From Pelomyxa schiedti (lineage: Eukaryota > Protista > Evosea), in contig JAHLWZ010000290.1 in NCBI GenBank assembly GCA_020536535.1, forward strand, positions 1 to 59,247: DNA of 59,247 nt, written 5' to 3'. Under the pieces are notes generated by a model, which made no database searches, was not told the DNA's origin, and worked only from the letters and a program-made list of their open reading frames with translations. The position numbers were made by a program, and so were the translations under genes. Positions 54,300 to 55,991 of the stretch are shown here, one piece after another (the first letter of the stretch is position 1; every line of letters begins with the position of its first letter).

Positions 54300-54747
54300 G
54301 GGTGCTTTCAAGGTGACACTCAGCCCTTTAAGATTCAACACACTGATTTTCTTAAATTAAAGACTCGAGGGTCGACGACTGAACTAGCATTGACAAAAGA
54401 AGATTTCCGGGCTGTGTGAAATGTGGTGTATCCAACAAGCCCAGCTTTTCTCCAGACTTCCACTGCCCAACCAGCGGAACCGCGGATTCTTCACTGGTCA
54501 CTCCCTTGAAGGTTGCTTTTGTTTCGCACATTCCAACTGGCTTACATCACAGTTATAGTTGTCGACAATGCAGAACCGGCACATCCTGGAATGATCTCGA
54601 GTACGCCATCACTCATAAAGTGCAGATTCAATAGGTATGCTTTGCTCTCTTATGAGGTCAAGGCATTGTGTTGCTTGTGCTAATACATGGATATTTTAAG
54701 ATATCTTCAGCTTCATAGATTTCAGCCTTTTTTTTTTTTTTTTGAAA

Positions 54748-54906
54748 GGAGTTGCGCATAGAACGCAAACCCCATCTAAACAAAAATTACACTGCTGGGC
54801 TCCCTTGCGGGATCCATACTGCAACCTCAGACTAGAGTGCTAAGTCCGAGGCTACAACAGCACACCAGTCCTTATTGATCAACGGTATGCACAGTCAGGT
54901 ATGTAT
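54748..54906 (-). ncRNA. U1: Variant U1 snRNA (5' end ATACATACCTG)
   Basis: The reverse complement folds as U1: helix H ACTG/CAGT, SL1 loop GATCAATAAG, SL2 loop TAGCACTCT closed by CCTCGGACT/AGTCTGAGG, SL3 GCAA tetraloop, Sm site TAATTTTTG, GC-rich SL4. About 159 nt. TCCCATAA at -63. Confidence 0.88.
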
Positions 54907-54961
54907 GAAGGAACACTTTGTCCTGTTGGGCGGTGAAATACCCCCGGTCCCTCCATCTGGG

Positions 54962-54990
54962 TTATGGGAAACCCTGGAAATTACCCATAA
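54962..54990. promoter_or_regulatory. Back-to-back DUSE-like snRNA upstream elements (bidirectional promoter)
   Basis: TCCCATAA on the - strand (54969-54962; -63 from the variant U1) and ACCCATAA on the + strand (54983-54990; -62 from the canonical U1). Both match the Dictyostelium DUSE consensus WCCCAWAA and its spacing. CCTTC immediately precedes both +1 sites. Confidence 0.8.
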
Positions 54991-55044
54991 GGGCAAAAAA
55001 CCCGGGCGGGTGAAATTGCGATCACACTGAGGTGGAAAACCTTC

Positions 55045-55203
55045 ATACTTACCTGGTACTCACAGACGCTGATCAATGAGGGCGTTTTGTGTGTTGACGA
55101 TCCCATTCCTGCACTCTGAGTGGGTTGTTGGCATGAGTCTCCGCAAGGGGATATCTAGTACACAATTTTTTCTAGTGGGGTGCGCGATTCTTCGCCGCCC
55201 TCC
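55045..55203 (+). ncRNA. U1: U1 snRNA (canonical 5' end ATACTTACCTG)
   Basis: ATACTTACCTG, helix H GTACT/AGTAC, SL1 loop GATCAATGAG, SL2 loop CTGCACTCT closed by CCCATTC/GAGTGGG, SL3 GCAA tetraloop, Sm-like AATTTTTTC, SL4. About 159 nt. Confidence 0.92.
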
Positions 55204-55386: not shown

Positions 55387-55991
55387 ATGGCGGCACGAAG
55401 CAGAGCAAATGTACGTCCAATTAACATTTACCACCAACCCTCGTAACGCGCAATGTCGAAGATCTTATTTGTATAAAACGAAACCCAACAAACCAACAAC
55501 CAAAGCAAGCCAGGTTACCCCCCGAAGTCAACCGCATTTTGTTCGTGCGTAACTTGCCGTGGAAAATCACGTCGGAGGAGATGTACGATATTTTTGGGAA
55601 ATACGGCGCCATAAGACAAATCAGAGTGTATGCCTCACGCTTTACTCTACTAACATCTGCTTCATTTCGCGTTTGCTTTATGTTCGATACCAATATTACA
55701 CACCATTAACCGCCAAAACCCACCTCTTACAGGGGAAATTCTTCTGACACTCGCGGTACAGCTTTTGTTGTATACGAGGATATCTATGATGCGAAAAACG
55801 CTGTTGATCACTTGTCTGGCTTCAATGTTTGTGGGAGATACCTCATCGTTCTGTACTTCAACCAAAACAAAATGACCAAGAAAACGGACTTGCAAAAGAA
55901 AAAGCAAGAGGTGGAGGCCCTCAAAGAGAAGTATGGCATGGATGAATCCGCAGCCAAGAAAGACACAGTGGCACCAAGTGCTGTGGATTAA
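55387..55991 (+). CDS. SF3B6: Splicing factor 3B subunit 6 (SF3b14a/p14), two introns
   Basis: [36 protein letters not shown]|.GN...[36 protein letters not shown]. Confidence 0.95.

Follow-up and report, generated by a model that had tools for sequence, protein, structure and literature searches.

Three U1 snRNA arm classes and a repeated head-to-head U1 gene pair in Pelomyxa schiedti

Introduction

Why would a single genome keep U1 snRNA genes that differ in the very arm with which U1 reads the 5' splice site? The question is raised by a pair of divergent U1 genes in Pelomyxa schiedti (GenBank assembly GCA_020536535.1), on contig JAHLWZ010000290.1, of which positions 1 to 59,247 were analysed (hereafter the window). 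The U1 arm is usually treated as nearly fixed. Its position 5 faces donor position +4, and the arm did not vary among 227 genomes of Saccharomycotina in spite of switches from A to U at +4 (PMC10581693). A 2026 tunicate study suggests that duplicated U1 genes may be limited in how far they can diverge (PMC13326754). P. schiedti belongs to the Archamoebae, and its single-cell genome comprises 52.4 Mb in 5337 scaffolds with 149,016 introns, 7.43 per gene (PMC8887013). A first-pass annotation of the window, made from the letters alone, had proposed that the two genes represent two specialised U1 snRNPs reading two classes of donor. Here we ask what the pair is, how many such genes the genome holds, and which donors they could serve.

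Results

The window contains two full-length U1 genes and no other Rfam match (Table 1). Both score above the RF00003 gathering score of 69.5 and span model positions 1-166, their starts are separated by 138 bp, and when folded with the arm and Sm site constrained unpaired each forms helix H, SL1-3 and SL4. The two divergent elements of full U1 architecture that had been described from the sequence are thereby corroborated, and the helix H, SL2 stems and loops given for both copies proved correct on re-reading. The + copy begins ATACTTACCTG and carries the canonical ACUUAC arm. The - copy begins ATACATACCTG, the differing base lying at window 54902; its arm is ACAUAC, a Watson-Crick match to GUAUGU donors, and we class it as a U1 variant like the published amoebozoan cases. 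Sm sites differ among canonical-class genes, and the less typical one (AAUUUUUUC) belongs to the canonical copy in the window.

Table 1. Features of the U1 gene pair in the window, with other loci mentioned in the text
Feature	Sequence	Position	Strand	Evidence
U1 snRNA gene, canonical U5 class, arm ACUUAC	window	55045..55203	+	RF00003 75.8 bits; folds as U1
U1 snRNA gene, A5 class, arm ACAUAC	window	54748..54906	-	RF00003 72.7 bits (match 54745-54906); folds as U1; top match of genome-specific U1 model
Arm reading 5' splice site, AUACAUACCUG	window	54896..54906	-	sequence; position 5 = window 54902; common to 10/10 intact A-body genes
Sm site AAUUUUUG, variant copy	window	54781..54788	-	sequence; unchanged in 10/10 intact A-body genes
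Sm-type site AAUUUUUUC, canonical copy, slightly atypical	window	55164..55172	+	sequence
CCATAA promoter-like box (DUSE-like), -61 of variant copy	window	54962..54967	-	sequence
CCATAA promoter-like box (DUSE-like), -60 of canonical copy	window	54985..54990	+	sequence
SF3B6/p14 gene	window	55387-55991	+	last exon matches PDB, E 2e-28
U-body U1 gene with A arm (L003)	C22	72485-72641	-	
Shortened U1-like copies	C1151	13638-14055 and 15330-15473		
Shortened U1-like copies	C918	59-389		
Shortened U1-like copy	C3860	272-415		
METTL16-family gene, three collinear pieces	C725	30624-31535	-	PF05971
G5 and canonical U1 genes in tandem, organism C	L099	124-281 and 617-774	+	each with CCCATAA upstream
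Animal-type U1 gene, A at position 5	L089	3717-3882	+	152 bits

Could the variant base be an error? A sequencing error at position 5 is excluded by the same A in 10 further full-length genes; in addition, a contig from a DNA run, covering 54789-55162 at depth 183, shows zero differing letters, position 5 included, although this run may itself be a source of the assembly. The U1 genes fall outside the coverage of two single-cell RNA assemblies that do cover neighbouring mRNAs, and such libraries are uninformative for snRNA.

Scanning the whole assembly (52,367,397 bases, 5337 contigs) with Rfam, pattern and custom-model searches revealed 27 U1-like loci, 21 full length and 6 shortened at SL3. 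By their arms the full-length genes fall into three classes, named here by the base at position 5, the sole arm position that varies among them: ACUUAC (canonical, U5; 8 genes), ACAUAC (A5; 11 genes) and ACGUAC (G5; 2 genes). The A5 class is therefore the largest, outnumbering the canonical one, and its 11 full-length members are spread over ten contigs. A class with C at position 5, or one altered at position 6, was absent from three pattern scans and a custom-model scan of the genome. Where the first-pass annotation proposed two classes, the genome has three.

The body of the RNA tracks its arm: genes with a U arm have helix H GUAC, those with A or G arms have ACUG (GUUG in one), and identity is 73-75% within classes and 55-60% between them. 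The exception is a U-body gene with an A arm on contig C22, which also carries G11>U and a short SL3 and represents either a second switch to A5 or conversion from its neighbour. Seven intact head-to-head pairs combine a U with an A gene at spacings of 132-152 bp, the partners being 50-61% identical; other pairs are an A+A pair on C22 and shortened pairs on C1151 and C918. Distances among the U partners track those among the A partners (Mantel rho 0.67, p 0.006), which indicates that the U+A pair was duplicated as a unit. The two G5 genes are unpaired, on contigs with host-like GC (45-47%) and short predicted introns.

Five of the six shortened copies were read. In these, G11>A is common to the A and U partners and both have lost 18-20 nt at SL3, with clean edges in the A partner and ragged ones in the U partner; the two partners have changed in parallel. 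The A form that lacks SL3 may be functional. What had looked like a fourth U1 family, with TTCCCGG after the arm at six or seven loci, is a repeat with no U1 fold and no Rfam match at E 0.05. ATACTYACCTG and GATCA at U1-like spacing occur in a repeat without U1 fold on C174, C294, C482, C792, C1186, C2434 and C4804, and promoter-anchored candidates on C526, C583, C792, C794, C873 and C901 were no more frequent than chance would give (12 control matches) and went unrecognised by the model.

The stems of these RNAs covary. In the 21-gene alignment, changes on both sides are seen in 26 of the 34 consensus pairs, and 94% of cells are paired, a result that none of 500 shuffles equalled and that compares with 37-56% in slid controls, although the relatedness of the 21 genes inflates such scores. 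Helix H is wholly exchanged between classes, yet 100% paired. The first 11 nt are fixed within each class, whereas only 41-46% of columns overall are invariant, and the columns of the U1-70K loop (GAUCA..AG) and U1A loop (GCAC) are invariant in all 21 full-length genes.

Upstream, a CCAYAA box stands at -58 to -63 in 21/21 full-length U1 genes, and the DNA between box and start is at or near shuffle level (identity 0.48-0.50 versus 0.45-0.47 shuffled). In dictyostelids, expressed ncRNA genes have the DUSE about 60 nt upstream (PMC7919456, PMC3188802), and the U1 boxes are of this kind (CCCAYAA-type, about 60-63 nt upstream). Covariation, a box in every full-length gene and spacers decayed to chance identity together mark the A5 variant as an old, selected family. 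The long-term selection on both copies that had been suggested is upheld by the same evidence, the spacers being at chance identity while the RNAs are 73-75% identical, and judged on sequence features the pair in the window is real, old and selected.

Which donors could the arms read? Ten RNA-verified junctions near the locus have T (5), A (2), C (2) or G (1) at +4. A raw count of GT..YAG distances over 169 kb revealed no peak from introns, and a gene model was therefore self-trained on these 169 kb with +3, +4 and +6 unseeded; it recovered exactly only 6 of the 10 verified introns. The predicted set comprises 451 GT introns, with a median length of 46 nt. At their donors +4 is T in 43%, A in 25%, C in 22% and G in 9%, compared with 38%, 25%, 24% and 13% inside introns, and the information content is 0.02 bits at +4 versus 0.43 at +3. 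Because +4 is so close to intron composition, we read it as nearly free with a T lean in the predicted introns, among which no distinct donor class with its own consensus appeared; the bimodal A-versus-T usage expected by the first-pass annotation is rejected, while its match of the variant arm to the commonest donor type stands.

Genome-wide, AG|GTA-N-GT motifs linked to an acceptor have T (623), A (451), G (359) or C (215) at the free position, just 1.0-1.8 times Markov expectation with G not separated from A or C, and a reversed control is no fair null; being near background, these counts lend weak support and give no class sizes. A G at -1 is scarcer at +4A donors than at others (46% versus 67%, p 5e-5), the pattern of the U5/U6 trade-off of PMC10581693. 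When each donor takes the best of the three arms, computed duplex energies average -6.2 instead of -4.6 kcal/mol; part of this gain is inevitable, because three arms will always do better than one. About 22% of donors are +4C, yet there are only two G5 genes.

The SF3B6/p14 gene begins 184 bp past the canonical U1 gene of the window, and its two RNA-verified introns start GTACGT and GTATGC, matches to the G5 and A5 arms. It is probably a chance neighbour.

U6 is represented by at least 19 full-length genes (L067-L081) that are almost identical, and the upstream box was found at those read; the U1 genes, by contrast, are highly diverged. ACAGAGA occurs in 15/15 U6 genes read (of 19 full-length matches), with no changed donor-pairing box among them. 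A zf-U1 search for U1-C, which like our other protein searches used exons or single ORFs, returned a single strong match (74.8 bits), with weak ones on a further two contigs. Uniform U6 among the genes read and one strong U1-C match fit a broadened U1 panel within one spliceosome better than two systems.

Searching metagenomes for U1 genes with A or G at position 5 yielded 25 matches, with real U1 genes on 12 contigs; frequencies cannot be read from these matches because only variants were sought. The Pelomyxa-specific A/G pattern found nothing in the metagenomes. Organism B (GC 55-59%) has A5 and G5 genes (L103 and L087, respectively) on separate contigs recovered from the same three assemblies, with a tetranucleotide correlation of 0.82-0.88, and the two likely share one genome; three homology-inferred introns of its cap-methyltransferase gene start GTACGC, GTGCGT and GTACGT. 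An RNMT search with organism B gave best named matches of 32% identity. Organism C carries a G5 and a canonical U1 gene in tandem (Table 1), the canonical one weaker (54 bits) with a weakened helix H. A single G5 gene was found on L093 and a single A5 gene on L097. A CCCATAA-like box precedes each of these metagenome U1 genes, at about -57 to -64, a hint that they come from Amoebozoa.

In a tree built without the arm, the organism B genes group together (98/90), as do those of organism C (96/85). AU tests, from which the long rows orgD and orgE, the C22 chimera and an animal gene were left out, rejected a single origin of A (p 0.001), G (5e-6) and U (0.0007), although paired sites violate the independence assumed by the tree model. 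Either position 5 was re-programmed repeatedly, or bodies were homogenised within genomes while arms stayed different. That organisms B and C also carry mixed position-5 arms is a new finding, and these arms apparently evolved separately. The animal gene, which served only as a tree row, is an animal-type U1 with A at position 5, located near a U2 gene, a histone stem-loop and another U1 copy; it is presumably not human, as its body sequence differs.

Discussion

What might three arms be for? We think it probable, on the sequence evidence assembled here, that the mixed U1 panel functionally widens donor recognition to nearly any +4 base. The window pair would be one copy of a two-gene cassette duplicated many times, and with a DUSE-like box for each gene its 138-bp spacer would hold two back-to-back promoters. 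Canonical, A5 and rarer G5 RNAs are probably transcribed, capped and assembled with a common Sm ring, U1-70K, U1A and U1-C, since their binding loops and Sm sites are intact. The canonical arm would pair with +4 A (and G by wobble), A5 with U, and G5 with C (and U by wobble), each class preferring its matching donors, and by computed duplex energies nearly every donor would find in the mixed pool a U1 that pairs at +4; after U1, all introns would pass to a common U6/U5 step. Such a panel would suit a genome in which short introns abound, donors are weak and +4 is under almost no constraint. Elsewhere U1 can do without pairing at position 5, since yeasts, Giardia and Trichomonas read +4U donors with canonical U1 (bioRxiv 10.1101/2022.06.08.495308), and this counts against the panel.

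The same point could be taken to mean that the classes are functional but interchangeable, position 5 being minor and having drifted in old duplicates kept for dosage, with the loose +4 set at U6/U5. Saccharomycotina do serve +4U donors with the canonical arm (PMC10581693), the paucity of -1G at +4A donors suggests that a step after U1 still reads +4, on C22 a single U-body gene has changed to A5, and invariance of position 5 is by itself weak evidence when 41-46% of columns are invariant. We nevertheless regard this reading as unlikely: position 5 alone differs in the arm and is fixed within classes despite saturated flanks; it has changed in several lineages, with at least 7 changes on the tree and single origins rejected, a recurrence that is partly by design, as the metagenome search asked only for A or G there; and the arm matches the donors where these are visible, namely at the three homology-inferred +4C donors of organism B, which has a G5 gene, and in Mastigamoeba and Entamoeba.

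Less probable again is the specialised arrangement of the first-pass annotation, in which separately regulated U1 snRNPs with their own proteins or expression would each serve a distinct intron set. Class-specific helix H (GUAC versus ACUG) and Sm context, partners only 50-61% identical, and G5 genes that stand alone and could be regulated apart are in keeping with it. Yet U and A genes are packed tightly and divergently into one cassette and carry the same promoter-like box, an arrangement that suggests co-expression, and no sign of separate machineries was seen, with one strong U1-C match and uniform U6 among the genes read; nor are there clean +4 classes, SF3B6 alone mixing +4C and +4T. A second splicing system is thus probably not what the locus encodes, and the family is larger than had been seen, with three classes. 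A family of pseudogenes, an error of assembly or the U1 of a contaminant is very unlikely to explain the variant, given covariation, fixed arms and the promoter-like box. The assembly does come from a single cell, the six shortened copies show that decay occurs, and the RNA assemblies cover neither U1 gene of the window; against this stand eleven full-length A5 genes on ten contigs, seven intact pairs linked to canonical genes, compensatory stems, an invariant Sm site, host-like G5 contigs and agreement with the DNA run.

The widening panel that we favour has relatives among known systems. The earlier statement that the U1 5' end is almost invariant across eukaryotes fails in this group, where the U1 arm is reported as ACAAAC in Entamoeba, ACGUAC in Mastigamoeba balamuthi and ACAUAC in Physarum, with standard and modified variants both present in the last (bioRxiv 10.1101/2022.06.08.495308). 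Coexistence of standard and A5 U1 therefore has a precedent, thinly documented: Physarum polycephalum, an amoebozoan like Pelomyxa, reportedly has an A5 arm beside standard U1 and GUAUGU as its commonest donor, but the case is an aside in a preprint without gene counts or layout, and no third class or head-to-head cassette is described. Mastigamoeba and Entamoeba, also Archamoebae, have re-programmed arms that match donor +4, and the Mastigamoeba arm is that of Pelomyxa G5; each is reported to have one arm type per genome, matching one dominant donor, however, whereas intron-rich Pelomyxa has three types and a nearly free +4.

Further afield, dictyostelid snRNA genes resemble those of Pelomyxa in their CCCAYAA-type box about 60 nt upstream and in close pairs of related genes (PMC3188802, PMC7919456), but those pairs are of closely related genes, whereas Pelomyxa pairs unite two classes with different arms. 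Human vU1 genes (PMC3561869, PMC10870369) are expressed paralogues beside the canonical gene, some in snRNPs; there they appear as imperfect copies by the main canonical locus, whereas the Pelomyxa variant class is larger and has one fixed arm change. U11 of the minor spliceosome is likewise an old U1 counterpart reading another donor; the Pelomyxa genes, unlike U11, score as U1, keep the U1-70K and U1A loops and have one arm base changed, with no variant U6 among the genes read. In the literature searched we found no paper on U1 in Pelomyxa; the panel of three classes, the repeated cassette of two and the loose +4 appear not to have been described there.

With three natural arms retained in one genome, and the variant class the largest, P. 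schiedti amounts to a natural version of the suppressor-U1 experiment, and offers a direct test of U1 pairing versus U6/U5 in shaping donor +4. More speculatively, and with considerable doubt on our part, a group of amoebae may have repeatedly evolved position-5 U1 panels whose classes serve matching +4 donors in a tunable ratio, so that splicing would be regulated by the RNA arm rather than by proteins. P. schiedti also has a METTL16-family gene despite donors that lean to +4U, and this intron-rich genome may be an exception to the link between +4U and METTL16 loss in intron-poor genomes.
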